From: Rebecca billardiae RCC1528
Taxonomy: Eukaryota; Protista; Haptophyta
NCBI GenBank assembly: GCA_965240325.2
Contig: OZ251226.1
Location: forward strand, 992,001 to 1,056,000
DNA: 64,000 bases
Direction: 5' to 3'
The translations under genes and the position numbers were made by a program. How positions within the stretch are numbered: the first letter of the stretch is position 1; the number at the start of each line of letters is the position of its first letter. The notes under the pieces are model-generated. The model was not told the DNA's origin and did not search any database. It saw only the letters and a program-made list of their open reading frames with translations. Shown piece after piece: positions 2,358 to 27,627 of this stretch.

Positions 2358-2678
2358 TATGGCCCGCGGTGCAGGGCGGAGCGCGCAGCGTGGAGCCCGC
2401 ACCAGCGGGCCCGAACCACGTTTCAAAAAGATCTTTGATCAAGAAAAAAGGGACGGGGGGCGATTTTTAGGGCTGGCGGAGACCGAGTTTCGAGTTTTTG
2501 AGATCGCATAGAGAGGTCTATTAGGCCGAAAATAAGCGCGTCCAGCTCATTCCCTTAAGTAAAGTGCGATCTGGACGTCAGCTGGACGTGACATTAACGT
2601 AACGGTTCGTTACGAGCGCGATTTTAAGTATGAGATTGCCACCAACCGCCAACCGATAAAAACGGCAAGGCAAGGGCT

Positions 2679-2823
2679 CGGGAAACTTGATCACTTGTAA
2701 ATGTGAATGGTAAAATGCTCTCCCCGAGCGCGCCTGTCGCCTCGCAGGCGCACGGGAAACTTGATCACTTGTAAATGTGAATGGTAAAATGCTCTCCCCG
2801 AGCGCGCCTGTCGCCTCGCAGGC
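2679..2823 (+). repeat. 74-bp tandem duplication inside B1
   Basis: CGGGAAACTTGATCACTTGTAAATGTGAATGG...CCTCGCAGGC starts at both 2679 and 2753. Confidence 0.9.
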
Positions 2824-2899
2824 CGCGCGTCTCGCCCTCTCCTCGCTCCGCTCTCCCCGAGGCTGAGCTCGCGGCCCGCCTGTCACCTCGCAGGCGCGC

Positions 2900-4230
2900 G
2901 CCACGGACACATGCGCGACGAGATCGCGGCGGGGGCGGCGAGATCGCGGCGGGGGCGACGGGCAACAACCTGCCCGCGGGCGCGTTCGTCACTCGAGGAG
3001 CAGCGCGCAAGGGCGAGCCGAGTCCGGAGCACGCGAGCTCGTCGCTCGCCGACCGGAGCAGAGCGCGCCGCCCGCCGCCGCCGAGCGAGCGGCGCGGCAG
3101 AGCTGATGAGCCGGATGCGCCCGGAGCTCGCGCGGCTGAAGGGCGAGCTCGAGCACGCGAGCTCGCGCCTCGACGCCGAGCCCGAGCTCCTCCTCAACTC
3201 AGTCGACGGCGGCCCGGAGCAGAGCGCGCCGCTGCGAGCGAGCGGGCAGCGCGGCAGAGCTGATGAGCCGGATGCGCCCGGAGCTCGCGCGGCTGAAGGG
3301 CGAGCTCGAGCACGCGAGCTCGCGCCTCGACGCCGAGCGCGAGCTCCTCCTCAACTCGGTCGACGGCGGCGCGGAGGTGCAGCAGCGTGAGGACGAGCAG
3401 GAGCATCAGTGAAACGCGCGCCGGTTCCGGGTCGCGCAGCGGCGCCCAGCTGCCTGCCACGCGAGCGGCGGCCACGTGGCGCGAGGAGGCTGCGTGGGGA
3501 AATCGCCGCGCGCGTCGACGCGGCGATCACCGGGCTGCAGGCCTCGGCAATCGACGCGGTGCGCACCCTCGCCGCCAGCCGCGACGACTCCGCCGTCGAG
3601 CTGCAGCAGCTGCGCGCGCAGATGCCAGAAGTGCCGATGGGCGGCGGCGTATCAGCAGGCTGACGTGCACGAGCACGTGACACGCGGAGGCGCTAGGCGC
3701 CAAGCTGGCGAAGTGCGGCGCCGAGCTCGACGAGCTGAGCGACGCGGCAACGGACGCGCTGGGCGCCCGCGCCGCCATCGTCGCGGCGCCCTCCAGCAGC
3801 TCGAGCAGCTGTGGATAGTTGGCTGTCGAGGCGACCGCGGGTGTGACTCACAGTGTGAGTGAGCCGGCGCGCGGCTCAGCCTGCCGCTGGCAGCCGCCGT
3901 CTTCGAGGCCGACGCGGCGGAGGAGGCGGCGGGCGAGCACGGCGGCGCGGTGGAGCAGGCGCGCACGCGCGGCGGCAGGCGCGACGCGCCGCTCGCCTCG
4001 TTCCACCGCCCCGAGCTCCGCTCGGTCGGTCTCGGTGCGAGGCTGCGCAGCCGGCAGGCCGGGGCCAGCAGTGGCGCGCGCTCTCGCTCTGCCGGCACGA
4101 GCGACCAGCGGCCCGTCGTCGAGCGCATGGCGCAGGGCGAGTACCTCAAGCAGGTGCGCCCGCTCGCGCGCACGCGCCGGCTCGCGCCGCGCCAGCGCCT
4201 CTCGCCCTGCCTGCGCGCGCGCGCCGGCCG
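2900..4230 (+). pseudogene. Frameshifted fragments of a coiled-coil protein gene carried inside B1
   Basis: Segments with host-like codons in different frames (ELARLKGELEHASSRLDAE, LRGEIAARVDAAITGLQASAIDAVRTL, VVERMAQGEYLKQ), followed by a host-type donor CAG|GTGCGC at 4154 and intron-like GC runs. Confidence 0.45.
3055..3370 (+). repeat. 157-bp tandem duplication inside B1
   Basis: AGCTGATGAGCCGGATGCGCCCGGAGCTCG... starts at both 3101 and 3258. Confidence 0.9.
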
Positions 4231-4426
4231 CTAGTCCCCGCGGCGGCCCGCGGACCCGCGGCGACAGTCCTCGGCCCGCCGGCCCGGTGGGCGGCAGTGA
4301 CTGAGTTGGCGGTGGCAGCTCAGGCGAACTGTTACACATGTCAGACTGAGACAGCAGCCGACGGAGGGTGCGTCGCGGGCCCCGAACTACGTTCGTTCTA
4401 CGGAAAAAGACCGCGGAACGCGGTCA

Positions 4427-4441
4427 TATATATATATATAT

Positions 4442-4474
<33 letters not shown>
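4427..4474. repeat. (TA)n(GATA)n microsatellite
   Basis: Read directly; it separates the 3' ends of B1 and X. Confidence 0.95.
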
Positions 4475-4475
4475 C

Positions 4476-6785
4476 GATGGACGGCTACGCCGATCTTCGG
4501 GTAGCTTGAACAACGAAGTTGAGGGCGCACGGCCCTAGCCGTAGTTCCGCGCGTGGCTGCGTGATGCGCCAGCTGCGCGCACCCGCTGCGCCCGCGTTGA
4601 CGGTTGAGCCCATGCGAGCGCCGCGCCTGCGAGCACACGCGGCGGCTCGACACAGCCGCACGGGCAGTGTCGCTCGTGCGCCTGCCCGTGATCAGTCTCA
4701 GCTCTGAGGCGCGCGCTCAGGAGGGCTGCGGCCGGGCCGAGCGCGATCTGCGCAGACGGTACAGCCCGTGGTGGCTCATGGGCAGCCCGAGCCCAAAGCC
4801 CGCCTCCGCCATCCGCGTCACAGCCGGCCGCTCCAGCCGAGGTCTCGCGTGCTGCGCTGCAGCCGTGCTCGGCCGAACCGGACGCCCGCCGAGCCGAGGC
4901 CGGGCACGCGGCTGATGAGCAGTGGTAGCCAGGCGAAGCCGTCGTCGCGGGCGAAGCTGCGCTGGGTGATGCGGCTGAGCAGTCGGGTTATACAGATTAG
5001 TTACAGTAAACGCGGGCCCGGGCTCACTGGAATCACACCGCGGGCCGGCGACCGCGCAGCCGGGAGCAGGCCCGGGCAATAACTATGAGCAAAATATCCG
5101 GCGCCAGAAAAGCGGCGGCGGCGCTGGCATGCGCCTAGCGGCACTGCCCTGGTACAGTCTACGCTCCCCTGGCCAGCCCAGCCGCCGCCGGGGCCATACC
5201 AGGCCACCACGGCGAAGCGTGCGCTCCCGCGGACCACCTCGGCCCGACACTGGCGGATCACCCGGCAGTCGTCAGCCATCTGACGCGTAGCGCGTCGACA
5301 AATGGCTGCTGACGGCGTAAAATCGGCCTGCGCGGCGGATGAAACGGCTGAAAGGCGAGGCCACGACGCCACCCAACTGGCGCACGCGCGTGCGGCCGGC
5401 GGTGCGGCGCAGCTCGGTCACTGCCACCGCTCCCGCGGGCTGCTCACTCACGCCGAGCGCTGTGTGAAATTGTTTGACCACGAGACAGTGCCGTCGCCCG
5501 CGATGGCAGCTGCAAGCTGATCGTGCGCTCGCCGCTCCCAGACGATGCAGCAGCCACGGACGTCACACACGGCACGGGGCGAGTGTGCCTCGAGCCTGCA
5601 CCACATCTTCGCCCGCCCTGCCCTCGCAAGGCGATGCAGACTGCAGAGGGCTGTCGCAGTCGTCTGGCGCAAGCAGCTCACACGCCGCGCACCGCGCGCG
5701 TGGCCGTGATGGGTCGGCACAGCCCAGTCAAAGACACGGCATCGTATCGCCCTCTGGCCGCCAGCAGCATCACCTCTGCCGTCTGCGAGCGACTCGTATA
5801 GTTGCAGCAGCAGCCGCCAAGAGCTTGCACAAATAAACTGCGCGACGGGCGCGCCGACGCGCGTAGACGCGGGTCGGCACCGGGGCGGGGCGCGAGGGGG
5901 GAAAGAGGCACGAATGCGATGCCAACGGCCGTTGGGACCCACCGCAGCCGCGCGCACCTGCGCTGAGTCTGTCGGATTGAACGATCGTGCGGCGGCGGCC
6001 TACATGGGCAGTGGCGGCTTTCTGCGCCTCGTTCGGAGCCTGCTGCCCGCCCGTCAATGCGCGACGGCCGCAAGGCCGTACCATGGTATAGTATTAATCA
6101 TGAAGGGAGATACTGTATCATGAAGATTTGTCCACTCAAGTTTATCGTTCATATTCGTCAAGCTCTCCCGGACGCGCCGGTATTAAATGGGAGAGAATCA
6201 AGGGTCGTGCGTGAATAAGCTGTACAAATTCTTATGCTCATGAGATTTTCAGGCCCGTCAATGCGGGTGGCAATCCATTCTTGCAATCACAAGAATGGAT
6301 TGCCACCCGCATTGACGTCGTATCAGTAGATGACCAAAAGTATATCAGCAAGAGTAGCTTGATAACCGTATGATACCAGGGCGCGCGGGAACGTCGATTC
6401 AAGCTACCCGCGCAATACCATATCGCGTCGCTTTGATGAATCTGAGGAGTGAACGTAGCTATTCAGAGAAGTAGTTCGATATCTCACCTTTTTTATGGTC
6501 ACTTCAACACACGAATCTTGACTATCAGAAAGGTATCAGAGATGACTTCGTCCTATTTGATTCCGATTTCTTCCATTACTTACTATCCAAAGATTAAGGG
6601 GCAGTACAAACGCAATCATGAGCAGCGATATGGGGTCTCTATGCTGCGGTTTCACACCTAAATCCAGCTACAAAAATCCCCCAAATCCTGCGCGCATCCT
6701 CTTTTTTGCGGATTTTGCGGAGCACGTGCGCCGCCCCCCCGGCTTTCGCTCACGCTCAGACCATTCGGGGGGGCCGTGCGCCATA
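4476..6785 (-). mobile_element. Helitron2/Helentron-like non-autonomous element, subfamily A (copy X)
   Basis: 5' terminus CCATA at 6781-6785 (reverse complement TATGG). The 12-bp IR GGGCCGTGCGCC (6771-6782) pairs with subterminal GGCGCACGGCCC (4524-4535). CAAC-GAA-GTTG at 4511-4521; terminal hairpin 4479-4495 with 2 mismatches. Interior ~5880-6125 is homologous (inverted) to the B2 interior ~26205-26465. Confidence 0.7.
6256..6317. repeat. Perfect 28-bp inverted repeat with a 6-nt loop
   Basis: CGTCAATGCGGGTGGCAATCCATTCTTG-caatca-CAAGAATGGATTGCCACCCGCATTGACG. Confidence 0.95.
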
Positions 6786-6828
6786 AGCTATAGCAGATGA
6801 GAGAGAGAGAGAGATATATGAATACATA

Positions 6829-8014
6829 TAGGGTGTGGGGGCAAACCCGCCCAGTCCCATCCACGCAATGTCATTTACTTAGAGGAAATCAGATATGGTT
6901 GTATAACCGCTCGGTTATGCGGGTATAACTCACCGGTAGCCCTCATGAGGGCGGGCTGGCAGCCAGGGTCCGGCTGCCTGGAGGTTTCCCGGTCGTCAAG
7001 CCGAGCCAGGCCCGGATTGGGCGCGGGTCTGGATTTGCTCAGCAGCTCGGCAAGCGATGCGCGTCTGGGTGCGGCTGCGCTCGCTGGCTGCACCCGCGGC
7101 GCGGCGGCCTGCGTGGCTGCTCGGGTCACCGCTGCGCTGGTGGCTCCTCCTCCTCTGGGAGTTGTTTCTCCCCGCCCTCCCACCCTGCTGGTTGCTGGGT
7201 GGGCATGGCCTTGGGTGCGCGCGGTGTCGGGGGGTTGGAGGCCCTCGAGGCCTCTGCCTCCTGCGGCGCCGCGCCCTGCCCAAACTTGCGTTGGGGGGGG
7301 CGTCGGCTGCCAGCGCCTGCGGTCTACGTGATCCATCGAGTACTTCCTCTTCGGTGCTAGGCGGTCATCGGCTTCTGTCGGCGTAGTTGCTCGAATGCAT
7401 CGGCGAGTCCTTCCTGGTCGGCGTCGCATCCTGGACGGCTTCGGGGGTGTGACCTAGTCACCTAACGCGTTTATCAACGCGGCCCCCACCTCAATCTACT
7501 CTCATGTGGGTCTACCGAGTGAGGCGGGACCTGGCCCTACTCAGTCCGGAAAAATAGCGTGGCGGGACGGGTTAGCAGCGCCCCGCTATTCCGCAGGCCT
7601 TCTTATGGGGAATTGAAAAATAGCGTGGCCGTGCAACGGTATCTCCTCTAAGTGGGAGATCGCGTCGCCGCATCGATCAGACTCACGCGAATCGTTGCTG
7701 AAAGGGCAGACGAGGACACATGCGGCCTCGCTGGCGCAGCGCCGCACGGAGGCGCGCGCGCGCGCGTTCTCGCACGTCCGTCGCGCATGGAAGAGCGTCC
7801 ACCTTAGCGCGCGCCGCACGACCAGAAGTCGACCTGGCCTGCCTCGTGCACTCTGGCGTGCGCGCTGCGGGCGGTGGAGCCCATCGGCGAGTGCGCTCGC
7901 CGCGTGGTGAACTCTTTGAAGGGCGCGCGGCTCGCGGCTCGCGCGTGGGGGTGCGCCGGAGCGAGATCGACCGTAACATTGCGTGGGACGGGAGGGGTTT
8001 GCCCCCACACCCTA
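6829..8014. mobile_element. Non-autonomous hAT-like DNA transposon (1186 bp)
   Basis: ~40-bp imperfect TIRs TAGGGTGTGGGGGCAAACCC...GGGTTTGCCCCCACACCCTA. 8-bp TSD with one mismatch: AATACATA (6821-6828) and AATAGATA (8015-8022). No transposase ORF. Confidence 0.75.
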
Positions 8015-8025
8015 AATAGATACTG

Positions 8026-9981
8026 ATGGCGCACGCCCCCCCCCCGAAAGGTCTGAGCGTGAGCGAAAGCCGGGGGGGGGCGGCGCACGTGCTCCGCAAA
8101 ATCAAAAAGAGGATGCGCGCAGGATTTTGGGGATTTTTCGGTAGGTGGCCACCGCGTATGAGTGGATATCGCTGCCGCAATGATTGCGTTTGTACTGCCC
8201 CTTAATTTTAACGATAGTAACACTTAGGGGAATGCAGGGTGGAATAGCACATAACACCAGCCGTGTGTTAGAACATTCCGTCATAGTAAGATGCCTGAAT
8301 TGTAAGAGCCTGAAACAGCTCGCCAACCATAGAAACGATAGGTTGGGTCGTCAGCTTTGATTCACGCGCTTCTGAAAAACAGCGTTTTAGATTAGACGCA
8401 TCGACACCTCTATCTGCGAGGATTAACAGCTCTCTGAAAACGAGTGTGTCCTGGACAACTTGAAAGGCGGAATACAATGTGCAGTTGTGACCCAAGATTC
8501 TCATGCCCATATCAAGCATGAGTACTCATTACTCATAGCACAATTCATCGGTGACTAGAATCAAGAGATCTTCAAACTGAAACGTGATTTGGACGTCGAA
8601 GAGGCACGCACGGCCCAAGGCCGAAGAGGCACGGCTCGTTGCTTGCGGTTGGCAATGCGGGGTGCTGCACTGCACAGGCGCGGTGCGACGGGGAGCATTC
8701 CTTCTCCCGGGCGGCCACCACGGCCTCGGAGGTGGTGAGGAACGCGTCGGCGACCACGGCGTGGACCACCTCCGTCGCGCCGGACACCCCGGTCGCCCCT
8801 CACCGGACTCCACCCTCGCCGCGCGCTGACCGTTTGCCGGTCGAGCCGTGCTTGCTGTGCTGCCTGCGCGGCCCGGCGCGTGCCCCCGCGTGGTGCCACA
8901 AGGCGGGTGCAGACGTGGCGGCGCGGTGGTGCGTGCGATCGGGGGACCCCACCTGAACTACGACACGGCTGCGCGCGCTCATCCGTGCTCATCACGGTGG
9001 TGGACGCGCGACTCGACGCGCGCATCGAGCGCGGCAGGCCGGCACGGCTCGGCTCGGCAGCCTGCTCGAGGCGCGAAGGCGCGCACCGCGCGCTGCCCGT
9101 GGGCGCGACGAGATGGTGCATCATCGCGCTACTTGCCATCTTCCTCTCGCCACGCCTTCGACACGATGGCTGCGACTGCTGCTCGGAGGCGCGCTCCGGG
9201 GGGCTCACGCACGCGTTCAGAATTCGGGCTCGGCGGTGACCGCGTGGACGAGGGGCAGCGCGGTGCACGGTGGCGGAGCGCGTGCGGAGCGCAGCCTACA
9301 CCTACTACACGCTCCATCCAGACACATCGCGCATGCTCGCGCGACCTCCTCGGTCCATCACGCGCGCGTGCGCGCGCGAGCAGGTTTCGGCAGCTGCCGG
9401 GCGCGAGCGAGCACGGCGCGCCGCGTTGGCGCGCGCGCACCGATACCCGTGCGCAGCTCGACGAGCGAGCGCGGTGTGTTTCGACGCGTATGGAGAGACG
9501 CGGTGCATCGTGGTGGAGCGCGTGCGGAGCGCAGCCTACACCTACTACACGCTCCATCCAGACACATCGCGCATGCTCGCGCGACCTCCTCGGTCCATCA
9601 CGCGCCCGTGCGCGCGCGACGGCAGGTGTGCACTCAGTGCAGCCGCCGGGCGCGAGCACGGCGCGCCGCGTTGGCGCGCGCGCACCGATACCCGTGCGCA
9701 GCTCGACGAGCGAGCGCGGTGGGGTTCGATGCCGCCGACCACCTCTGGCTCGGTCGCGCTCACGAGGCTGGTCGCGGGCCTAATCGTGCCGTGTATTGGC
9801 TGCCTGCTCGGTCATTGGTGAACTCGCGACGCCGACTACAAGTACAACCGCGAGTACGGTTACACGTATTCTGGTAGGCATGCTGTGATTGTGAGTTTAT
9901 GCAACTGTGATATTCTGTACATAGGGCCGTGCGCCCTCAACTTCGTTGTTCACTACCCGAAGATCGGCGTAGCCGATCATA
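8026..9981 (+). mobile_element. Helitron2/Helentron-like non-autonomous element, subfamily A (copy Y)
   Basis: 5' end ATGGCGCACG... matches W and X over ~180 bp. 3' end: subterminal IR GGGCCGTGCGCC 9924-9935, CAAC-TTC-GTTG 9938-9948, perfect hairpin GATCGGC-GTA-GCCGATC 9962-9978, then ATA. Confidence 0.7.
9270..9720 (+). repeat. ~240-bp tandem duplication inside Y
   Basis: CGTGCGGAGCGCAGCCTACACCTACTACACG... starts at both 9281 and 9521. Confidence 0.9.
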
Positions 9982-10039
9982 GATAGCCTAAGCCTACTAT
10001 ACTGTCGCTCAGAAGTAACCTAGCTGCTTATTCAATAAC

Positions 10040-10062
10040 TGATGATGATGATGATGATGATG
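10040..10062. repeat. (TGA)n microsatellite
   Basis: Read directly. Confidence 0.9.
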
Positions 10063-10188
10063 CCGTTATTCGTCCGCCGCCCCGGGCCGGTCGAATTAAA
10101 TATAAACAATTAAATTCAAATTTACAAGGCGGACTCTGGGCACTCTCCGCTCTGGCCTGAGACTCTGGCGGCGACTCTGTCTCTGCTA

Positions 10189-10233
10189 ATCACGCCTTAA
10201 CCAAGTGTGCACGCTAAATCATAGCAAACTGTA
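10189..10233 (-). repeat. 45-bp dispersed repeat (family C), copy 2
   Basis: Reverse complement of 1719-1763 with 2 substitutions. Confidence 0.85.
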
Positions 10234-10422
10234 CTAAGACTTAAGATCGAGTGATGAGTGCTGGCAGAGTCAGCCAATGTCAATGATCCTCGCGCGCGAG
10301 TTCAGGGAGTAGGGACAGGCTGGCTCATGTCGCCGAGACAGCTCACCAGTGTTGTCGCAACGATCAGCGCCGCCGCGAGCGCGGGCAGCAGCCCAGAGCC
10401 GCACTGTTGACTGTAAGCTTCT

Positions 10423-13008
10423 TCAGGACGACGGCGGCGACACCAATTCGCGTGCCAACCCTTCTGCAAAGCGTGCGTTGTTCGCGGCTGAGCCAGATGC
10501 ACCGCTGTAGTCCTCGTAGCTCACGCGCACGACCTGCCAGCCCAACGATTCGAGCACGCGCGTCTTCCACTGGCTGGGCCCGTTGAGTCGCTGCGCGCCC
10601 GTCCACGGGTCGGTCACGAAGTGCGACGGCCCATCGTACTCCACAGCCACCTTGGACGCGGCGCACGCCATGTCCACGACGAGCAGCCCGCCCTCGCCGA
10701 TGCGCACCTCCTCCTCGTGCGCCCAGCCGCACTCTGCGAGCGCGCGAGACAGCGCCCGCTGCGATGACGACGAGCGCACCCGTGACACTCGGTCACGGAG
10801 CAGCTGGCTACCGAGGCACTGCGCCAGCATGGACTCCACACGAGTGCGTGCGGTGCCAACGGGCAGGCGTGCATCGGCGTGCAGCGTGATCAGTGCCTGC
10901 GCCACATTGGTGTGCGCCTCCAGCGCGAGTTGCGCTTGCAGCCCAGATGCAGCAAGGAGTCGCTCGCACAGGGACAGCAGAAGCTGCCGATGCTCCATGT
11001 GCTGGGCAGCCGTCGCATACGCCCACACCGTGTTGGCCATGTTCTGCGCATTGAACTCGCCCACGCGCGCCTCGGCCTCCCGCGCGATCGCGCCATACAG
11101 CGCGGGTGCGTCCACGCCAGCTGTGGCGTACGCCCACGCCGTGTTGGCCAGCCCCTGCGCATTGAACTCGCCCACGCGCGCCTCGGCCTCCCGCGCGATC
11201 GCGCCATGCAGCGCGGGTGCGTCAACGCCAGCTGTGGCGTACGCCCACGCCGTGTTGGCCATGTCCTGCGCATTGAGCTCGCCCACGCGCGCCTCGGCCT
11301 CCCGCGCGATCGCGCCATACAGCGCGGGTGCGGCCACGCCCACTGTGGCGTACGCCCACGCCGTGTTGGCCATGTCCTGCGCATTGAGCTCGCCCACGCG
11401 CGCCTCGGCCTCCCGCGCGATCGCGCCATACAGCGCGGGTGCGGCCACGCCCGCTGTGGCGTACGCCCACGCCGTGTTGGCCAGCCCCTGCGCATTGAAC
11501 TCGCCCACGCGCGCCTCGGCCTCCCGCGCGATCGCGCCATACAGCGCGGGCGCGTCCACGCGCGCTGTGGCGTACGCCCAAGCCGTGTTGGCCATGTTCT
11601 GCGGCTTGAACTCGCCCACGCGCGCCTCGGCCTCCCGCGCGATCGCGCCATACAGCGCGGGTGCGGCCACGCCCGCTGTGGCGTACGCCCACGCCGTGTT
11701 GGCCATGTCCTGCGCATTGAGCTCGCCCACGCGCGCCTCGGCCTCCCGCGCGATCGCGCCATACAGCGCGGGTGCGGCCACGCCCGCTGTGGCGTACGCC
11801 CACGCCGTGTTGGCCAGCCCCTGCGCATTGAACTCGCCCACGCGCGCCTCGGCCTCCCGCGCGATCGCGCCATACAGCGCGGGTGCGGCCACGCCAGCTG
11901 TGGCGTACGCCCACGCCGTGTTGGCCAGCCCCTGCGCATTGAACTCGCCCACGCGCGCCTCGGCCTCCCGCGCGATCGCGCCATACAGCGCGGGTGCGGC
12001 CACGCCCACTGTGGCGTACGCCCACGCCGTGTTGGCCATGTCCTGCGCATTGAGATCGCCCACGCGCGCCTCGGCCTCCCGCGCGATCGCGCCATACAGC
12101 GCGGGTGCGGCCACGCCCGCTGTGGCGTACGCCCACGCCGTGTTGGCCAGCCCCTGCGGCTTGAACTCGCCCACGCGCGCCTCGGCCTCCCGCGCGATCG
12201 CGCCATACAGCGCGGGTGCGTCCACGCCAGCTGTGGCGTACGCCCACGCCGTGTTGGCCAGCCCCTGCGCATTGAACTCGCCCACGCGCGCCTCGGCCTC
12301 CCGCGCGATCGCGCCATACAGCGCGGGTGCGTCCACGCCAGCTGTGGCGTACGCCCACGCCGTGTTGGCCAGCCCCTGCGCATTGAACTCGCCCACGCGC
12401 GCCTCGGCCTCCCGCGCGATCGCGCCATACAGCGCGGGTGCGGCCACGCCCGCTGTGGCGTACGCCCACGCCGTGTTGGCCAGCTCCTGCGCATTGAACT
12501 CGCCCACGCGCGCCTCGGCCTCCCGCGCGATCGCGCCGAATGTGCGCTCGGCACCGCACTTCGTCGGCCGCAGCTTGGCCAGGCCGTGCGCTAAGTTAGC
12601 CACTTGGCGGGCGCTATACGGCGAGCCGTCGACTGCCGTGCCCTCCAGCCGCCGCTCCACGCGCGCGAGCAGGGCGCCAAAGGGCTTGTCGGTGCGCAAC
12701 ACGTGGCCGCGCAACGTGCGCGCGTTGCGACCCAGTCGAGAGATGGCTGTAGCCTCGTTCACCGGGTTGAACGCGTGGCTATGCGTAGCGCACACATCGA
12801 GGATGCGTTTCGCGTCACGTGCATCCGTGAGCTGCTGGTTAATCATCTTGTTGTCTGGCCGGCGTGATGGGCCGCCAGCGTGCATCGTCGCCCGTAGCGC
12901 AGCACAGGCGAGTGCGGGCGAAGGCGGCATGCGCGCTCGCAGCCCATACGCGCTACGCGGGCATGCGCCCGCACTGGTGCTCACCAACCGCCCTAACAGC
13001 CCGAGCAT
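10423..13008 (-). CDS. Helical-repeat (37-aa HPR/OPR-like) RNA-binding protein with C-terminal RAP domain, probably organelle-targeted
   Basis: 861-aa ORF with 13 full and 1 partial repeats of FNAQGLANTAWAYATAGVAAPALYGAIAREAEARVGE. RAP motifs VDMA...VAVEYDGPSHF and K.RVLESLGWQVVRVSY. The N-terminus is Arg/Ser/Ala/Leu-rich and lacks acidic residues, like a mitochondrial presequence. Confidence 0.9.
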   Translation of the reverse strand: MLGLLGRLVSTSAGACPRSAYGLRARMPPSPALACAALRATMHAGGPSRRPDNKMINQQLTDARDAKRILDVCATHSHAFNPVNEATAISRLGRNARTLRGHVLRTDKPFGALLARVERRLEGTAVDGSPYSARQVANLAHGLAKLRPTKCGAERTFGAIAREAEARVGEFNAQELANTAWAYATAGVAAPALYGAIAREAEARVGEFNAQGLANTAWAYATAGVDAPALYGAIAREAEARVGEFNAQGLANTAWAYATAGVDAPALYGAIAREAEARVGEFKPQGLANTAWAYATAGVAAPALYGAIAREAEARVGDLNAQDMANTAWAYATVGVAAPALYGAIAREAEARVGEFNAQGLANTAWAYATAGVAAPALYGAIAREAEARVGEFNAQGLANTAWAYATAGVAAPALYGAIAREAEARVGELNAQDMANTAWAYATAGVAAPALYGAIAREAEARVGEFKPQNMANTAWAYATARVDAPALYGAIAREAEARVGEFNAQGLANTAWAYATAGVAAPALYGAIAREAEARVGELNAQDMANTAWAYATVGVAAPALYGAIAREAEARVGELNAQDMANTAWAYATAGVDAPALHGAIAREAEARVGEFNAQGLANTAWAYATAGVDAPALYGAIAREAEARVGEFNAQNMANTVWAYATAAQHMEHRQLLLSLCERLLAASGLQAQLALEAHTNVAQALITLHADARLPVGTARTRVESMLAQCLGSQLLRDRVSRVRSSSSQRALSRALAECGWAHEEEVRIGEGGLLVVDMACAASKVAVEYDGPSHFVTDPWTGAQRLNGPSQWKTRVLESLGWQVVRVSYEDYSGASGSAANNARFAEGLARELVSPPSS
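11010..12537 (-). repeat. 111-bp coding tandem array, ~14 units
   Basis: Phe codons at 12498 and 11055 are exactly 13 x 111 bp apart; units are nearly identical at DNA level. Confidence 0.97.
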
Positions 13009-13734
13009 CCTTCTCCAGGCCGGCCCCGTGCGCCGCGACGCCGCGTGGAAGACGACGCCTGCGTCCCCTCCAGCTGCAGCCGTGGACTTCGGACCAACCG
13101 GTCGTCACTGCGACACGATGGCGGCCAAATCCATCCGGCCGTCGTCACGTCGGTCAAGGTTGTACGCGTGCAGGTGCGCCTGCTGCCGCGGTTCGCGCCG
13201 CACGTGCGCGCTGCGCTCGAATAAGCGGGCGCGCTACTGGGCGAGAACGAGCCGAGGGATGCGGCTCGCGCATGCGTTGGTGCGGCGGGCCCCGCCCCGG
13301 CTACTCTCCGGCGCGGCGCCCGACCGGCTGCGCCGCCCGATGTCCGCCGACAGATCAGGTCAGCGCGGCGCCTGTCAACAGTCACGGTCATCACATCGCG
13401 GTCTGGCAGCATCGCCGTTGGTGATGTTGGTGAACTCACATGCCACTGACGATGCTGACAGTGCGCGCTGTCGCCGTGGCTCTACACATGCACGTAGTCT
13501 GCGGGTCACGTCATCGACAGAGAGTCAGAGACATCAGACTCGACATTAATATTTTATTTTTAAGCACCGTTGACCACGTCACCAACGACACCAACGACAT
13601 CACATTACTGTACTGGTAGTGCGCACGTTCCGTCAACATTCATCGTACGTAATAAGTGATCGCGTCAGTGTCAGACTCCAACATCGACTTTTCGCCTCCC
13701 CGCCGCATCCGCGTCCGCGAGCCGCGAGTTCTGA

Positions 13735-15717: not shown

Positions 15718-15898
15718 CACTGTCCACCTACGGTGGGGCGTCCGCACCTCTCCATCGTCGTGCGTCCGGTGCGTCCGGGCGGCGATCTCACGTCCACCAC
15801 CGTGTCCGGGCGCAACGCAACGCCTGTCAAGCAAGTCACGTCTCGGTGCTGGTGAGCGCGCGTCTGGACCGCTGATAAGCGCCGGCGCCGACGCAGCC

Positions 15899-17893: not shown

Positions 17894-18291
17894 GGCGGGG
17901 CGCAATGGCGGCGCAGTTTCTAAGCTGAGCCGGCCGCGCGCGCGTCGGACATGGACGGCGCCGGCGACGACGGCCAGATTCGGGCCGGCGGCAGATGCTG
18001 CACTTGCGCGCTGCTTCCGCGGCCCTTGTAATTGACGATGTGCGAGCATCTGAGAAAGATGCGAACGCTGCGCGTCATGTGTGATGGATGATATATATTG
18101 TCGACGATTAAATAACGACGGGCCGGCACGGGCGGCGCGGTGGGCGGCGTTGGAGTTGGACTACGTCTACTGGCCCTATGATACTGTAGCCCTATGTAGA
18201 GTCGTAGGTCTGTCGTCTGCTATTTGCTGTCTTGTAAATAATAATTGTTATAATAGCAGTGCGCTGAAATATGTAAACTCGGCGCGGCGGC

Positions 18292-19344
18292 TTATTGTTC
18301 AGAGCCGCCGGCGCAGTCGGAGTCGGAGACCAGGGTCGCCGTGCAAAGCAGACGCCGCCGAGGATCATCCGGTGGGAGAACGACCCTTCGCGCAGTGACG
18401 ACCCCGTCGGGAACGGGGACCACAGACTGATGCACACACGTTGGAGCTGCTCGTCGGGCAAAGCCAGCAAGGGCATCGCAAGGCTGAGCAGGATCATCTT
18501 GGCTCCGCGAGCACGACTGCGGCTGCGGCAGGTCCTGCTCGGCACCAATGTGAACATCGTTGCCGTGAGTGACACTGTCAGGTGAGCGCCAGAGCGCGAC
18601 TTGGGCTGTGGGCAGTGGCGGCGGCAGCGGCGACTGCGGCAGTGCAATGCCAATGGCGACACCGCGTGCAGTAGCGGCTCTGAGGTCGGTGTGCTCTCGC
18701 TGTCGCTTGGCGTTGTGCATTGGCTGGCTGCCTGGGTGTTCTGCCAGCCTGCGCCTGTGCATGGTGCGCTGGCGTTTGTGGAGCATGCCGGCCAGCTTGT
18801 GCTCAGCGCACCGGCTGGCGCGCGTGTCGTCCAGCATGCCAAATGAAGGCCACTTGGTGCAGCCCGCGTGATCGCACTTGCGGCTCGTCACATTGACCAT
18901 GCCGGCCAGCTTGTGCTCAGCGCACCGGATGGGGCGCGTGTCGCCCGGCATGCCGAAGCATGGCAGCGTGGTGCAGCCGGTATGAGAACACTTGCGGTTC
19001 TTCACATCGACCATGCCGGCCAGCTTGTGCTCAGCGCACCGGATGGGGCGCGTGTCGCCCGGCATGCCGAAGCATGGCAGCGTCGTGCAGCCGGCATGAT
19101 CGCACATGGGACTCTTCACATTGACCATGCCGGCCAGCTTGTGCTCAGCGCATCGGCTGCCGCGCGCGTCGCCCGGCATGCCAAATGAAGGCCACTTGGT
19201 GCAGCCCGCGTGATCGCACTTGCGGCTCGTCACATTGACCATGCCGGCCAGCTTGTGCTCAGCGCATCGGCTGGCGCGCGCGTCGGCCGGCATGCCGTAC
19301 GACGGCCCCTTCACGCAGCCGGCATGATCGCACTTGCGGGCCAT
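18292..19344 (-). CDS. EsV-1-7-type cysteine-rich repeat protein (five 38-aa repeats)
   Basis: Repeat CxxxGCxxxPxFGMPGDxRxxRCAEHKLAGMVNV with a 114-bp period at ~18780-19335. The C-terminal half is non-repetitive and less certain. Confidence 0.75.
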   Translation of the reverse strand: MARKCDHAGCVKGPSYGMPADARASRCAEHKLAGMVNVTSRKCDHAGCTKWPSFGMPGDARGSRCAEHKLAGMVNVKSPMCDHAGCTTLPCFGMPGDTRPIRCAEHKLAGMVDVKNRKCSHTGCTTLPCFGMPGDTRPIRCAEHKLAGMVNVTSRKCDHAGCTKWPSFGMLDDTRASRCAEHKLAGMLHKRQRTMHRRRLAEHPGSQPMHNAKRQREHTDLRAATARGVAIGIALPQSPLPPPLPTAQVALWRSPDSVTHGNDVHIGAEQDLPQPQSCSRSQDDPAQPCDALAGFARRAAPTCVHQSVVPVPDGVVTARRVVLPPDDPRRRLLCTATLVSDSDCAGGSEQ

Positions 19345-19538
19345 GACGACACGATGACGACGCGTGATCCGCCCCCAAATACGGCCCTTGCCCCAAAGGT
19401 GGTATAAAAAAATGGCGGGCCGTAGTACTCCCCCATATTTATCATACTATTCAGTAATAACGATTTATGTACTCGACGTCCGGCCGGGTGTTGCGGCGGC
19501 GGCGGGCGCGCGGCTGAGCATCGTCGGCACCGGCGCCC

Positions 19539-21659: not shown

Positions 21660-22543
21660 GCCACGCTCGGCTGGCGGGGCCACCGCTGCCACGGCAATCG
21701 CCATGACTCGGCATGCTCGAGCTGCGTTGACGTTCCTGGACGACATCCGCCAACACGACATCGCGTCGTCGATCGCGCGTGTCAGAGCTGATCAAGAGCA
21801 GCACGGCATCGAGTCTCGAGAGTCTCAGTCCTAATCAGAAGAAGTATGTCGCATGAGTCCGATGGCGATGCTGAGCAGCACCTGCGCTGGTCATTCCGCT
21901 ATAACTCGGGCTGTGAGTCGGGCGGCTGACTACAGTACTGATGTTATTAATATACGGCTACTACAGTCTACACAGGTTATTACTCGTAGTCAGGACGACT
22001 CGTCGTGACAGGTAGTCTGTTAGTATCACTTAGTTCCGCGCAGCACCATATGCATTGTAGCGCAGCTACGGAATCTCAGGAATATACTACGACTAGCCTA
22101 TTACTTGCTGCTATACCCAGAGGCCAGCGCAGATGACCGTCCATCAGTGTGAGTGAGTCCGCTGCCTGACCGAGTATGTATGACATCAGGAATCTTCAGG
22201 TCCTCACTACGAGTTCGTTCAGTGATGATGTCAATTCAGCAGTAGTCGCGTCGTTCGGACGATCGTCGGATTCGGAGAGTGACTGCTGACAGTATAGCGC
22301 TACCGCCGCTACTGTAGTACGCGCAATGCTCCGAAAACTCGCTGCATACCGCCGCTACGGTACGCGCACTCAAAACTCGCTGCTGCTGCGAGTCTGATAG
22401 CTACTACTCTGTACTCAGTCAGCTAATATAAGTCAGGAGTGCACTGAGTGACGTATTAGAGTCTGAGTCTGCTGATGGGTATAGCGTCGGAGTCACGCAC
22501 TGACAGAGCCGATGACGTCATGCAGTCAACGACGATGTCGTCG

Positions 22544-23596
22544 TCACCGCCGGTGTGCCATCGGCTGCGCCTGATGGTTCGGCACGCTCGCAACGTTGGT
22601 GGCGTTCGCTCTGACGCCGCATGCGCGCATTCGCACCTCGAGCAGGCGGCGGCAGAGGACGTACAGCCTCTCATCCCAGTACAGCTGCGCCTTGATTTCG
22701 CGCAGGGTCGAGGGCGATGGCTTCGTGTCGAGGTGCGTGGCACCCGGGTTCGTGTGCATCCGCGCGTACATGCTCACGTCCACGCCGCCAAAGAAGGACG
22801 GCAGCATGTGCTGCAGCAAGCGCAGCGAGGGCTCAAACTGCTCGAGCACGCCCACCCACAGGTACGCGTGCAGCACGTGCTCGCGTGCGAGCTCGTACCG
22901 CCTCTTCAGGTCGTTCGTGTGGCACACGGGGTCCTTGATGCCGCAAAACACATTCACGAGGAAGCCGGGCCCAGGGAAGAAGTACTTGAGCGCCCCGGGC
23001 TGGTAGGTGATGTTCCACTGCTTCCACGCGTCGTCGATGGAGTTCTTGCAGAAGTGCGGGATGGTGTGCGGCAGGTGGCGGAGCTCAGGCGCACCCCCGC
23101 GGCAGGCGGCAATGAAGCCGCACGTGCAGTCGCGCTGGTAGTAGTACAGGCTGCTGAAGAGCTTTGACGGCTCGCGCACCACGTTGATCCAGACAAGCAG
23201 GTTGTTGGGCAGCGGGCTGATGTCCGCGTACCACGTGTGCGCGTCGTACAGCGAAGGCAGCGGCTCGTTCAGGCGCTTCTCAATCCACTTGTTGTAGAGC
23301 GCGGGCGTGTGCATTCGAGGGAACGTGCCGGGCTCGTGCGAGATCGTGAAAGGGTTCGCCTTCGCAGCTTGCATGATCATGGACAGCATGGTGACCGAGC
23401 CAGCCTTGGCGACGCGGTTGTAGATGACGTGCTGGGGAGCCACGTAGCGCGTGCACTCCGTCTCGGCGGCGAGGGCCGCCTCATCGGCAGCGTCAAGCGT
23501 CACCCTCGGGCCCACTGCGGCTGCGCCGTGAGCCGCCCGAGGCGACGCCAGCACGATGAGCGCCAACGTCGAGAGCGGTCCTTGGCCCGCCGCCAT
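22544..23596 (-). CDS. Sulfotransferase, heparan-sulfate/uronyl 2-O-sulfotransferase-like
   Basis: 5'-PSB YNRVAKAGSVT, 3'-PB VVREP...SLYYY, and YLWVGVLE. Hydrophobic N-terminal signal from Met at 23596 (alternative start 23647). Confidence 0.82.
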   Translation of the reverse strand: MAAGQGPLSTLALIVLASPRAAHGAAAVGPRVTLDAADEAALAAETECTRYVAPQHVIYNRVAKAGSVTMLSMIMQAAKANPFTISHEPGTFPRMHTPALYNKWIEKRLNEPLPSLYDAHTWYADISPLPNNLLVWINVVREPSKLFSSLYYYQRDCTCGFIAACRGGAPELRHLPHTIPHFCKNSIDDAWKQWNITYQPGALKYFFPGPGFLVNVFCGIKDPVCHTNDLKRRYELAREHVLHAYLWVGVLEQFEPSLRLLQHMLPSFFGGVDVSMYARMHTNPGATHLDTKPSPSTLREIKAQLYWDERLYVLCRRLLEVRMRACGVRANATNVASVPNHQAQPMAHRR

Positions 23597-23702
23597 GCGT
23601 GCCCGCGCCTTTCCGCCCGGCACGCTCTCGCGGACAGCATTGTGCATTTACTTGTATCAACCAAGAAGTCCAAGACCCCCCACCGGCCACCGGTCGGCCA
23701 CG

Positions 23703-24575
23703 ATGGCGACGCCAGCCATGATATCCGCAGCGCAGTCCGACCCGTTGTGGGCCGACGCCCTGCGCCGATTGGACGCAGGCGAGTCTGCCGCGTCGATCCT
23801 CGGCGAATCTGCGCGAGCTGTGCTCGCAGGTGGGACTCAGCTCGACGCTGCGCGCAGCCCGATCAATCACCTGCACATGCAGATTGGCGACGAGGTCATC
23901 AGCATGCACGTGCCCCTCCCGTTGGCGCCGAGCTTTCAGCGACCGCTCCCACCGGTATTGGTGATACCCGGAGCATCCTGGGCGGACACTGGGCTCGGGC
24001 CACACTTCATCGGCGCCGAGGAGGTCTACGGCCAGGCTTTCCCCGACGATGAGCGAGACACGGCGGTCATGGCGGCTGAAGGCGCGTGGGAGTCGGCACT
24101 TGCTTCAACGGAGTGGGAAAGGGGCGAGTTGGTCGACGACGCGGTGGTGCGCACGCTTCTGGCAGTGCCATCCGCGCGCTCTCGGGCACTCATGGCTAGC
24201 CTAAGTGCCGCAGATGCGGACCACCCGCAGCGTGGCCGCAGCTTTGCGTGCGCGGCGCTGCAGCGCCTTGTGCCGCTGGCTTGCGAGCACATGGCAGGCG
24301 AGTTGGGCGCCGCATTGCCAGTGCGTGTGGTAGACCTGATACAGGCTCTGCTGCTCGTCAGTGGCGCACTCGAGCTAGCCCCTGACGACTTTGAGGCCTT
24401 TCTGGAGCTGCTGGGACTCCCGGGCTGCGCGTTCGGCGACGACCGCAGTCGACCTTCAGCGAGCCCGCAGTCGGCTACCGACCCGGATGGCCAGCGCGAG
24501 GCCGGACTTGCCGAGGCAATAGGGCACGTCGTGGTGGCGACATACCTCGAACGCCACTACGATTTCGCGGGTTGA
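23703..24575 (+). CDS. Hypothetical protein
   Basis: 290-aa ATG-initiated ORF with natural, helical, acidic composition; divergent from the sulfotransferase; no motif recognised. Confidence 0.6.
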   Translation: MATPAMISAAQSDPLWADALRRLDAGESAASILGESARAVLAGGTQLDAARSPINHLHMQIGDEVISMHVPLPLAPSFQRPLPPVLVIPGASWADTGLGPHFIGAEEVYGQAFPDDERDTAVMAAEGAWESALASTEWERGELVDDAVVRTLLAVPSARSRALMASLSAADADHPQRGRSFACAALQRLVPLACEHMAGELGAALPVRVVDLIQALLLVSGALELAPDDFEAFLELLGLPGCAFGDDRSRPSASPQSATDPDGQREAGLAEAIGHVVVATYLERHYDFAG

Positions 24576-24996
24576 CGACGATGGCCTGATGACCATTGCG
24601 ACGTCGTCTTAGACACTCGCTGTGTCGTCTCCAGCTTTCTGCAACTCATCAGAGCATTATCAGTGAGACTGCTCGTCAGACTAGGAGCTCAAGCCTCAAG
24701 AGTCAAGAGCTGAGTTGAGAGCAGAGAGCGGCGGTTGGCCAAAAGGGGCGGTTGCTCACCAAACCACGGCCATCCGCCGAGTCCAGTCCGGCCGGGCGGC
24801 CGGGCGGCGGGTGCGCAGCCCCCCCCCCCCCCCCCCCCCCGGCCCGGCCTGACCAAAGGACCATTCCTTTGGCCTGACAAGCTGGTTGCGAGCGCTTGCT
24901 CACTTGCGCAGCGAGAATCTTTTCGCTCGTCCGGAGAGCTCGCCGGTGGGCACGACGCGCGCGCGCGTGTGGGTCGCTCGGCACCCGCTTGGACCG

Positions 24997-25752
24997 ATGG
25001 CGAGCTCGTCTGCCACGGACAAGGCCGAGGCGCTATTGAAGCAGCAGGTTGCAAGCAACGCGTCGAACACGGCGCGGAAGGAGGCCTCCAAGGTGACGGA
25101 CTGGCTGAAAGAGGGTCCGTTCGCGCTCAAGGCCCTCGCATTCCTCGTGTGCGCTGCATCGGTCGTCGTCTCCGTACTCAACATCCTCGGCAACCTGCTG
25201 AACCCATTCAAGCTGGTGATCTGCGTGTATGCGGGGTTCTTCGCTCTGATCGGCATGGTGCTTGAGGTGAAACCCGTGATGTGCACGAGGCGCTGCAAGA
25301 CGTCGATCGAATTCTGGGCCAAAATGCTCAGCCGCGTGTGGGGCCGGTCGTTGTTCTACATGCTGGTGGCTGCCATGCAGTTGAGCCAGGGCTCGATCCT
25401 GTCGTATGTCTGCGCTGGGGGGCTTGTCATCGTATCCGGCCTCTCCATGATTGTCTCGCGTGCCGCGGCAAACAAGCTGAAGGGGTTGCACCGTGTTCTG
25501 ATCAAGACTGCTGGCGAGCAGGACGAAGCCAAGATCCGCGCAAAGTTCAACGAGCTCGACCGCGACAAGAGCGGCTCCCTCGACGCATCTGAGCTGGCTG
25601 TGCTCGCCTCGTCGTTGGGGGCCGACTTCACGCGAGACGAGATCTCAGCGGTCTTTGAAGTGCTTGACCGCGATTCGTCCGGCAAGATCGACTATGAGGA
25701 ATTCACGGCGTGGTGGCGCGGGGACCGGGAAGGCGCCTACACGTGCGTCTGA
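24997..25752 (+). CDS. COPI-associated (TVP15-like) multi-pass membrane protein with two C-terminal EF-hands
   Basis: 3-4 hydrophobic helices with a WGRSLFY motif; canonical EF loops DRDKSGSLDASE and DRDSSGKIDYEE. Confidence 0.82.
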   Translation: MASSSATDKAEALLKQQVASNASNTARKEASKVTDWLKEGPFALKALAFLVCAASVVVSVLNILGNLLNPFKLVICVYAGFFALIGMVLEVKPVMCTRRCKTSIEFWAKMLSRVWGRSLFYMLVAAMQLSQGSILSYVCAGGLVIVSGLSMIVSRAAANKLKGLHRVLIKTAGEQDEAKIRAKFNELDRDKSGSLDASELAVLASSLGADFTRDEISAVFEVLDRDSSGKIDYEEFTAWWRGDREGAYTCV

Positions 25753-25842
25753 CTCTGAGGCTGTATGAGTGAATCAGACTCAGAAGACAGATCGAGGTGC
25801 CTGGCCTTGAACCGCAGCGTAGATCTGTATGGTGTGAGTCGT

Positions 25843-27627
25843 TATGGCCCGCGGTGCAGGGCGGAGCGCGCAGCGTGGAGCCCGCACCAGCGGGCCCGAA
25901 CCACGTTTCAAAAAGATCTTTGATCAGCAAGAAAAAGGGACGGGGGCCGATTTTTAGGGCTGGCGGAGACCGAATTTCGATTTTTGAGATCGCAGTAGAG
26001 AGGTCTATCCCGGTCGAAATGACCGCGCCCACAGATTTCGCCTATTCAATCGTGGACGGCCGGGCGTGAGATTCCGTCAGGTTGTGTGAAGTTGGACGGT
26101 TACAAGTTCGATACAACATCACCCCCTTTCGAGGCTATTTTCGTCTTGGCATTCAAGGAGCGACGCGACGTTTGATGATCAAATGTTGATCGCGCAACCA
26201 CAACGCAATCTTCATACTATCTCGTCCCTTGATGAATACTGGATACGGCCTTCTGAGCTCTGGAGTAGTGGAGTCGTCGCCTCGCCGCCTCGGCCACTGC
26301 CAGCACAGCCGAACGAAAGCGAACGGAGGCCGAGCGGCGGCCCGCTGCGGCAGCGCACGATCGTTCAATCCGACGGACTCAGCGCAGGTGCGCGCTGCTG
26401 CGGCGGGTATCCCGACGGTCGTCAGCGTCGCTTTCGTGCCCGCTCACCCCGCGCGCCCCGCCCTGCCGATCCCTCTTCGGCCCAGTCAGTGCGGTTTCCA
26501 ACCGAGCACCGGACCGCGGACACGAATCGATGTCGACGCTCGCGCGCGGAGAGCAGTCGGCGACGGTACGAGGAGGAGACCGCGGGGCATCCTAACGCGT
26601 GAATCCATGCGCGCGCCCGCGCGCGCCACGCCGCACGCCGCGCAGCTGAACTCTCGGCATGTTCAAGCGCGGGCGGTCGCGAGGACGTCGCGGTTCAGCC
26701 GCGTCTCGCCGAGCCTGATCTGCAGTGCGGAGCCTTGCGCTCGCGCGCGGAGAGCAGTCGGCGACGGTACGAGGAGGAGACCGCGGGGCATCCTAACGCG
26801 TGAATCCATGCGCGCGCCCGCGCGCGCCACGCCGCACGCCGCGCAGCTGAACTCTCGGCATGTTCAAGCGCGGGCGGTCGCGACGACGTCGCGGTTCAGC
26901 CGCGTCTCGCCGAGCCTGATCTGCAGTGCGGAGCCTTCGCCTGATCCAGTCGGCGTGGTGCGAGCGGGTAGTCTTGGACGTTTTGTCGGGATGTGGAGCA
27001 GCCACCACGGCCATCTCGCTCGCCCAAGCCCTCGCTCGCGCCGTCCATGGCCGAGCTGTGATGGCTCATCCGCGTGCGGCGTGCTGACTGACTGGAGCCT
27101 CTGGCTGCACATGATGCAGCGGCGCGGCAAGCAGCGCGCGCAGATCTGCGGGCGACGAGACTGGGCGAGTCCGAGTCGCAGCACGAGCTGGACCACGCGC
27201 ACATCCTTTTTGCTCTCGTCCGCCGCATCCGAGCTGTCTCGAGTCTCGACGGCTTGACTGGCGCATGGGCGGGCGTTTCGCGCGCGAGCTCGGAGCTCGG
27301 ACTGCGCGCTGACCGTGAGCGGCGGCTCTCACTCACTCAGTGACTGAGAGCCAGCTCTGGCGCTGATGGGCACGACGGATGCCTGACTGCCTGACACGAG
27401 AGCCACAGGCTGATCTGCGAGCGGCGAGTCCGCGCGACGATGGCGAGGTTAGTGGCCGATAAGTGCGACTCCGGGGCGACGCCGCGGCTGTGTGAGTGTC
27501 CGTGGTGGTCGGACGGAGCGGGTGGCACACCGCACAGACTGTCAGACGGCCGGCACAGACAGACTCTGCACCGCGGGCCCCCAACTACGTTGGTTCTGAC
27601 GGAAGAGGACCGCGGAACGCGGTCATA
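25843..27627 (+). mobile_element. Helitron2/Helentron-like non-autonomous element, subfamily B (copy B2)
   Basis: Perfect 14-bp asymmetric IR: GGCCCGCGGTGCAG (25846-25859) and CTGCACCGCGGGCC (27566-27579). CCAAC-TAC-GTTGG 27581-27593; GACCGCG-GAA-CGCGGTC 27608-27624. Ends shared with B1; no long TSD. Confidence 0.72.
26537..26937 (+). repeat. 201-bp tandem duplication inside B2
   Basis: GCTCGCGCGCGGAGAGCAGTCGGCGACGG... starts at both 26538 and 26739. Confidence 0.92.

Follow-up and report, generated by a model that had tools for sequence, protein, structure and literature searches.

Probable Helitron2-type rolling-circle elements of two related non-autonomous families in the haptophyte Rebecca billardiae

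Helitron2 elements, as defined by Bao and Jurka (2013; PMC3627910), carry asymmetric inverted repeats (ATIRs) of 8-15 nt, a 5' hairpin and a 3' hairpin, with compensatory changes, and correspond to the group named HLE2 (PMC11417382). The end from which they start has been argued to be the 3' end (Bao and Jurka; PMC3627910), while Helraiser starts from the 5' end (PMC5876387). End-joined circles have been shown by PCR for FoHeli1 and FoHeli2 of Fusarium oxysporum (PMC5148889).

The window analyzed was a stretch of 64 kb of R. billardiae RCC1528 DNA (contig OZ251226.1, positions 992,001 to 1,056,000). Five of its segments are real elements with two types of ends, A (W, X and Y) and B (B1 and B2). 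An earlier note on this DNA had listed five copies; their positions were about right, but only four are complete, and W is merely a 5' stub.

1932..2356, minus strand: W, A-type 5' stub of 425 nt without 3' end, sharing 93% identity with the 5' portion of X
2360..4426, plus strand: B1, complete B-type element of 2067 nt, between A and T
4478..6783, minus strand: X, complete A-type element of 2306 nt, between A and T
5871..5991, minus strand: internal X segment of 121 nt, 84% match to 26354-26472 of B2, lying the same way round in both elements
8027..9979, plus strand: Y, complete A-type element of 1953 nt, between A and T
9259-9729: internal tandem duplication of Y, 240-nt
25845..27625, plus strand: B2, complete B-type element of 1781 nt, between A and T
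26537-26937: internal tandem duplication of B2, 201-nt

The cargo of the copies is unrelated and in part shared. A covariance model of the 3' end detected no further copy in the window, and none in ~88 kb of related Pavlovales and Helitron loci. No Pfam match was obtained in 111 reading-frame pieces, and neither tblastn nor HMM searches based on seven RepHel proteins detected a RepHel remnant, which agrees with the earlier report that no transposase ORF is present; the Rfam search gave no match.

All four full copies have in common A-TGG...CA-T, and 4/4 sit between A and T. The ends are thus best read as A|TGG...CA|T and not as TAT...ATA, a reading proposed before that fits B1 and B2 only, given that X ends in ATC and Y starts with GAT. 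Since these are the ends common to the four copies, the terminal hairpin ends 1 nt from the terminus instead of the 3 nt formerly given. No consistent target site duplication (TSD) of at least 3 nt was found in the four full copies, as had been claimed for long duplications, and AT lies on both sides of every copy. The 5' T and the absence of a consistent TSD fit A|TGG...CA|T, and the shared AT is also compatible with a 2-nt duplication. A 6-bp TSD was found in none of B1, B2 and X, and Y showed one offset 7-nt match in its GATA-rich flank. The T at position -3 in W and B1 was rejected as independent evidence, since these two copies share all three bases of their left flanks.

The ATIR measures 12-14 nt, its 5' copy beginning at nt 2 in all copies and its 3' copy lying 44-46 nt from the 3' end.

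2361-2374, plus strand: B1 5' ATIR
4370..4381, plus strand: B1 3' ATIR, decayed, 10/12
4524..4535, minus strand: X 3' ATIR, 12/12 to 6771-6782
6771..6782, minus strand: X 5' ATIR, start of a C-run/G-run fold-back
8028..8039, plus strand: Y 5' ATIR, one mismatch to the 3' copy
9924..9935, plus strand: Y 3' ATIR
25846..25859, plus strand: B2 5' ATIR
27566..27579, plus strand: B2 3' ATIR, 14/14

The two arms match at 14/14 positions in B2, 12/12 in X, 11/12 in Y and only 10/12 in B1; in random window segments, a 12/12 match was reached in 0/20000 trials, 11/12 in 0.3% and 10/12 in 2.8%. ATIR pairs of the same family agree at 10-12/12 positions and cross-family pairs at 7-8/12, so both copies change together, and the co-varying repeat about 45 bp inside the 3' end noticed earlier was borne out.

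The folds of the ends were located as follows.

2361..2411, plus strand: B1 5' fold-back stem including the 5' ATIR, GCA triloop, z -3.3
4383..4395, plus strand: B1 mini-hairpin, 5-bp stem, loop TAC (bottom strand GTA)
4409..4425, plus strand: B1 terminal hairpin, 7-bp stem, GAA loop
4479..4495, minus strand: X terminal hairpin, GTA loop, 2/7 pairs broken
4511..4521, minus strand: X mini-hairpin, 4-bp stem, loop TTC, which reads GAA on the bottom strand of X
9938..9948, plus strand: Y mini-hairpin, 4-bp stem, loop TTC
9962..9978, plus strand: Y terminal hairpin, 7-bp stem, GTA loop
27581..27593, plus strand: B2 mini-hairpin, 5-bp stem, loop TAC, one pair swapped relative to B1
27608..27624, plus strand: B2 terminal hairpin, 7-bp stem, GAA loop

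The 5' fold-back described before holds for type B, in which the fold (z -3.3) contains the ATIR, but is weak in type A (z -2.6 in Y, -1.3 in W and -0.06 in X), where the proposed "ears" are unpaired in the centroid structure and X carries a mutated CC-GAAA-GG ear. The mini-hairpin after the subterminal repeat is present, with the stem pair swapped between B2 and B1. The terminal hairpin, once called fully compensated, is so between B and Y, with three two-sided compensated pairs between the families and all 7 bp of the stem intact in B1, B2 and Y, but only 5/7 pairs are kept in X. Over both 3' hairpins, 92% of cells were paired and 4 pairs had changed on both sides, compared with 12-58% of cells in slid controls. 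This covariation comes from two lineages related by descent, and about 57% of the last 58 nt is common to families A and B; the view that a fold and not a sequence is conserved was therefore overstated. B2 and Y agree at 8/12 positions of the ATIR, 12/15 of the mini-hairpin segment, 11/18 of the terminal hairpin and 2/13 of the spacer.

With a probability of roughly 0.8, A and B are two related non-autonomous families of Helitron2/HLE2 type, moved in trans by a RepHel transposase encoded elsewhere in the genome. The layout of their ends equals the published Helitron2 layout, and they are therefore new families of a known kind: as in Helitron2, the 5' ATIR copy lies 0-2 nt from the end within the 5' hairpin, the 3' copy lies upstream of the 3' hairpin, compensatory changes occur between related families and, in the A|TGG...CA|T reading, the 5' base is T; Helitron2 forms no TSD (PMC3627910), and no consistent one was found here. 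The earlier assignment to a non-autonomous HUH-type element resembling Helitron2/Helentron stands on the ATIR, the end folds, the lack of a consistent TSD and the lack of coding capacity, whereas the novelty claimed for the layout does not, as ATIRs, both hairpins and compensatory changes belong to the published definition (PMC3627910). A 5' ATIR within a 5' hairpin, a subterminal 3' ATIR and a 3' hairpin were all found; the T|T target, a usual but non-defining HLE2 trait, was replaced by A|T in 4/4 copies. The 3' ATIR is 20-30 nt from the end in Helitron2 (PMC3627910) and 44-46 nt here, and A/B elements carry an additional mini-hairpin between ATIR and terminal hairpin, which was not found in the published Helitron2-type descriptions consulted. 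This mini-hairpin with its bottom-strand GNA loop, the A|T target and a hairpin 1 nt from the end are unusual local peculiarities.

HINE/DINE-1 elements, which are non-autonomous Helentrons, share with A and B the 12-15-nt subTIRs whose 3' copy lies 38-60 nt before the terminus, the central tandem repeats, the inverted repeat nested in the 5' subTIR, the 3' stem-loop and an apparently unmodified target, but have terminal T runs and a T|T target, both missing here, and a stem-loop 8-35 nt from the end compared with 1 nt (PMC4067079). Under the 11-nt rule of the same work, A and B would count as separate families. FoHeli1 and FoHeli2 are alike in their 12-nt ATIR, hairpins at both ends, 5' GAA loops, a 3' repeat located 38-51 nt before the terminus and a TNAT-motif target; they differ in ending in ATTTT, encoding RepHel and holding the 3' repeat itself in a hairpin, whereas here two hairpins come after it (PMC5148889).

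On the model of Helraiser (PMC5876387) and following what Bao and Jurka proposed, one strand would be nicked at A|T by the HUH domain and peeled off by the helicase while a host polymerase refilled the donor. The 5' end would first fold on itself, until the emerging 3' ATIR displaced this fold and paired with the 5' ATIR; this would juxtapose the two ends, enclose the mini-hairpin as well as the terminal hairpin in the resulting loop and leave the ...CA|TGG... join unpaired. A circle could then be closed by the enzyme and inserted at another A|T without duplication; in B1, B2 and Y, the putative cut sites (left flank, right end and circle join) would all have the sequence T-N-A|T. The short stable GNA loops probably just speed hairpin formation in single-stranded DNA. 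End pairing was predicted to be favored over separate folds in B2 (-45.3 vs -36.9 kcal/mol) and X (-35.5 vs -31.4), while no preference for ATIR pairing was predicted at the join of B1 or Y.

It seems rather unlikely that these elements represent a separate sublineage of HLE2, or a new group of HUH elements, with T-N-A|T cutting and signals split between strands; the displaced top strand would then carry a GNA hairpin, and the bottom strand a C-GNA-G mini-hairpin that stalls the refilling polymerase or primes the second strand. If true, such signals would bear on which strand and end Helitron2 start from. The earlier proposal that each strand shows a GNA hairpin signal of its own is a conjecture drawing on two lineages, 12/15 identical over the mini-hairpin; this hairpin forms on the top strand too in the predicted end-pairing structure.

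Recognition of GNA mini-hairpins, one per strand, by another HUH enzyme (a Replitron-like Y1 Rep or an undescribed one) is improbable. Replitrons are likewise of HUH type with terminal palindromes and mostly no TSD, and have been tentatively reported in haptophytes (PMC10288648); here, too, no consistent TSD was found and hairpins occur at both ends. The GNA loops of the elements are commoner than background, GNA being found on either strand in 6/69 other triloop hairpins of the window, and the 5' loop of both families holds two GCG-N(N)-AGC motifs against 1.5-1.7 per kb. However, these motifs are equally readable as a conserved AGCG/AGCC sequence repeat, and only two lineages, kin by descent, are compared. 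ATIRs are a Helitron2 trait, and Replitron membership was rejected because the short direct terminal repeats defining that group (PMC10288648) are missing, the dinucleotide AT alone recurring at the ends.

Very improbable is a Helitron1-type RepHel acting on ends that converged on the Helitron2 layout or were taken from it. Helitron1/Helraiser inserts between A and T without duplication and, like A and B, has a 3' hairpin (PMC5876387), and the A|T target, found in 4/4 copies, is typical of Helitron1; nevertheless, the accepted HLE2 members FoHeli1/2 also deviate from T|T (PMC5148889), Helitron1 has TC...CTRR ends without ATIRs, and membership was rejected because the A/B ends are TGG and TCA/CCA. 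A cut-and-paste DDE transposase, either of IS3EU/GingerRoot type (TA..TA or TG..CA ends) or one making a 2-nt AT duplication, is hardly credible even if the ends can be read as TG...CA (TAT...ATA in B1 and B2) and AT flanks every copy, since a repeat 44-46 nt from the right end leaves no symmetric TIR for a transposase dimer, and IS3EU, raised earlier because of the TAT...ATA ends, was rejected because it always has TA..TA and mostly 6-bp TSDs (PMC10045372), whereas X and Y (2/4 copies) lack TA..TA, no 6-bp TSD was found, B1, B2 and X have no TSD and the repeat is asymmetric.

No autonomous element with the same ends was found in the window or in the public collections searched. Motif scans of these collections turned up Reps of phages, a single RepHel resembling Helitron1 and five Helentrons of animal-like type. 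When one of these Helentrons served as query, 150 HLE2 proteins were retrieved, but none had a composition matching that of a GC-rich alga. The exact 3' hairpin matched twice in viral contigs, both times by chance and with the other features missing, and the 21 matches of a relaxed 3' end pattern in metagenomes were all attributed to chance (0-3/5 free pairs, no paired stem).

The main value of these elements lies in annotation, as abundant-looking, cargo-shuffling elements of a little-studied algal group that detectors demanding T|T targets or CTRR ends would overlook. Additionally, since no reconstituted Helitron2 element was found in the literature consulted, a young family with compact, well-conserved ends would make a convenient test of the ATIR-switch model of termination and of the role of the extra mini-hairpin.

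Regarding the insertion sites, four elements were inserted into a 146-nt island with an A+T content of 70%, the window as a whole having 69% G+C, and the right flank of B1 is a (TA)n(GATA)n tract. B2 lies 92 nt downstream of the stop codon of an EF-hand gene. In an empty-site test via neighboring genes, its left junction was matched by two independent short-read contigs, both of which stop 23 nt inside B2 and represent the filled allele.

Comparison of the window with itself revealed two types of element ends, A (W, X and Y) and B (B1 and B2). W is a 5' stub of 425 nt, and the other four are complete copies, each reading TGG...CA between A and T:

2360-4426, B1, complete copy with type B ends
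4478-6783 (minus strand), X, complete copy with type A ends
8027-9979, Y, complete copy with type A ends
25845-27625, B2, complete copy with type B ends

The sequence A-TGG...CA-T was read in 4/4 complete copies and is most simply taken as an element, TGG...CA, that went in between A and T, with a register ambiguous by two bases (AT). The TAT...ATA termini of the earlier note are present in B1 and B2, but they are not the common ends. No duplication of at least 3 nt was common to the copies, in agreement with the claimed lack of a long target site duplication (TSD); Y showed one offset 7-nt flank match, in a GATA-rich flank. The left flanks end in TTA, TTA, TGA, TTA and TAA, three of them independent, and a T at position -3 is found at 23% of the AT sites in the window. 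A T-N-A|T target preference is therefore only suggested (p ~0.01, post hoc, three independent flanks).

The copies resembled one another only over their first 160-430 nt and their last 54-56 nt; their bodies were unrelated, save for a 121-nt piece (84%) common to X (5871-5991) and B2 (26354-26472), and cargo thus crosses family lines. Short-read contigs from two public runs were 100% identical to the window until 23 nt into B2, where they ended; the left junction of B2 is therefore not an assembly error, and its end is repeat-like. W and B1 lie head to head with three bases (TTA) between them (2357-2359), and B1 and X tail to tail, separated by a 51-nt TA/GATA microsatellite. Of the copies, only X carries a perfect fold-back of 28 bp, closed by a 6-nt loop (6256-6317, ~-37 kcal/mol). 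A 13-nt inverted copy of its own 3' spacer was also detected at ~6398-6410, ~375 nt from the 5' end, and in the corresponding place in W; it may be left over from an older end that faced the other way, or may mark a second long-range pairing.

The paired features were then compared with chance. The two copies of the asymmetric terminal inverted repeat (ATIR), the first of which begins at nt 2, matched at every position in B2 (14/14) and X (12/12), and at 11/12 in Y and 10/12 in B1. Among 20000 random segments of the window, 12/12 was never reached, and 11/12 and 10/12 were reached in 0.3% and 2.8%. Cross-family pairs matched at most at 7-8/12, against 10-12/12 for own-family pairs, so both ATIR copies changed together, as had been proposed. 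When the 3' ends were aligned (four sequences from two lineages), 92% of the cells were paired, compared with 12-58% in slid controls, and the terminal stem showed three two-sided changes, the mini-hairpin one. The terminal hairpin, described previously as fully compensated, is so only between B and Y; the stem of X is broken at two pairs. The proposed folding back of the 5' end was strong in B (z -3.3 against shuffles) and moderate in Y (z -2.6), but W and X folded no better than shuffles, and the two GAAA hairpins ("ears") claimed in the type A fold were unpaired in the centroid. Nor do the ends conserve the fold instead of the sequence: B2 and Y are identical at 8/12 positions of the ATIR, 12/15 of the mini-hairpin segment, 11/18 of the terminal hairpin and 2/13 of the spacer, and the 5' ends are alignable too.

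The elements are real, and they are new families of an already known type, most probably Helitron2. Helitron2 has ATIRs of 8-15 nt, a 5' T, a 5' copy that lies within a hairpin at 0-2 nt from the end, and a 3' copy upstream of a hairpin (PMC3627910), and this ATIR and hairpin structure was found at both ends of the elements, as the earlier note had supposed. Compensatory changes in Helitron2 ends have already been published (PMC3627910). In non-autonomous Helentrons (HINEs) the 3' repeat lies at a distance of 38-60 nt from the end, and the centre holds tandem repeats (PMC4067079); likewise, our 3' ATIR lies at 44-46 nt, and three bodies contain internal tandem duplications of 74-240 nt. In the Fusarium oxysporum Helitrons FoHeli1/2 there are hairpins with GAA loops, the repeat lies 38-51 nt from the end, and the target contains a TNAT motif (PMC5148889). 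The elements differ from Helitron2 in their A|T site, the usual target being T|T, in the distance of 1 nt between terminal hairpin and end, and in the additional mini-hairpin. They do not fit IS3EU (TA..TA ends, 6-bp TSD; PMC10045372), Replitrons (direct terminal repeats; PMC10288648) or Helitron1 (TC...CTRR).

The Rep-helicase (RepHel) of Helraiser nicks the top strand and yields precise end-joined circles, which insert at A|T without duplication (PMC5876387). Bao and Jurka proposed that the two ATIRs pair, destroying the 5' hairpin and thereby setting the end point (PMC3627910); they also argued that Chlamydomonas Helitron2 starts at the 3' end. Beyond the anatomy of the elements, we infer every step by analogy with Helraiser and this proposal. 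RepHel acting in trans would peel one element strand away, the 3' ATIR would then displace the 5' fold, and the two ends would come together, the loop enclosing both 3' hairpins and the CA|TGG join staying unpaired. With DNA folding parameters, the end join and the separate folds came to -45.3 vs -36.9 kcal/mol in B2, and to -35.5 vs -31.4 kcal/mol in X. This modelling supports a fold switch in these two copies, whose ATIRs are intact, but not in B1 and Y, where it was not favoured.

The terminal hairpins have top-strand loops GAA (B) and GTA (A), and the mini-hairpin loops TAC and TTC read GTA and GAA on the bottom strand, with a C-G closing pair. Only 6/69 other triloop hairpins of the window have a GNA loop on either strand, and GCG-N-AGC and GCG-NN-AGC, which are very stable DNA mini-hairpins (PMC13037366), occur together twice per 5' loop vs 1.5-1.7 per kb; for these reasons the bias towards GNA loops in these sequences is likely real. 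That the bottom-strand mini-hairpin is a signal separate from the top-strand hairpin, each strand presenting its own, is not supported here and has a low probability. The mini-hairpin segment is 80% identical between the families by descent, only one loop change was sampled, and in the structure predicted for the joined ends the stem is present on the top strand too.

Consistent with the reported lack of a transposase, no Pfam match was obtained among 111 stop-free frame pieces and no RepHel remnant in the window with seven RepHel proteins as queries. Rfam gave no match. Relatives of the elements were found neither in the viral or metagenome contigs searched nor around the orthologous gene of related Pavlovales, and no autonomous partner with the same ends was found in the public collections searched. 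A Helitron RepHel of 1676 aa (Helitron_like_N + PIF1) was detected in a giant-virus MAG contig (L060:3832-8859), with a partial one in contig L072; this could be host contamination. Five contigs of four bacterial MAGs in GTDB (L076, L077, L078, L079 and L081) encode Helentron-type RepHel proteins, 3/5 with an endonuclease domain, and are almost surely eukaryotic contamination.

The window is eukaryotic DNA with 69% G+C. Among named relatives, those closest to its intronless DEAD-box helicase gene (58074-60212) come from haptophytes, at 74% for a cluster that includes Pavlovales sp. CCMP2436 and 62-65% for Chrysochromulina and Prymnesium; the host is presumably a member of the Pavlovales. A former island of 146 nt, 70% A+T, holds W, B1, X, a TA-flanked MITE and Y. 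The MITE (6831-8012), between X and Y, is Tc1/mariner-like, with imperfect terminal inverted repeats of ~40 nt and TA on either side. A dispersed A+T-rich repeat of 45-48 nt (90-94% identity) with an internal palindrome was found at 1716-1763 (+), 10189-10236 (-) and 52170-52217 (+), and two copies, inverted to each other, bracket the entire W-B1-X-MITE-Y cluster. Elsewhere, the gene at 10423-13008 (-) contains ~14 near-identical repeats of 111 nt (37 aa) each, five tandem units of 114 nt at 18784-19339 (-) encode 38-aa Cys/His-rich repeats, and a fold-back element with arms of 358 nt (98%) occupies 32703-33773.
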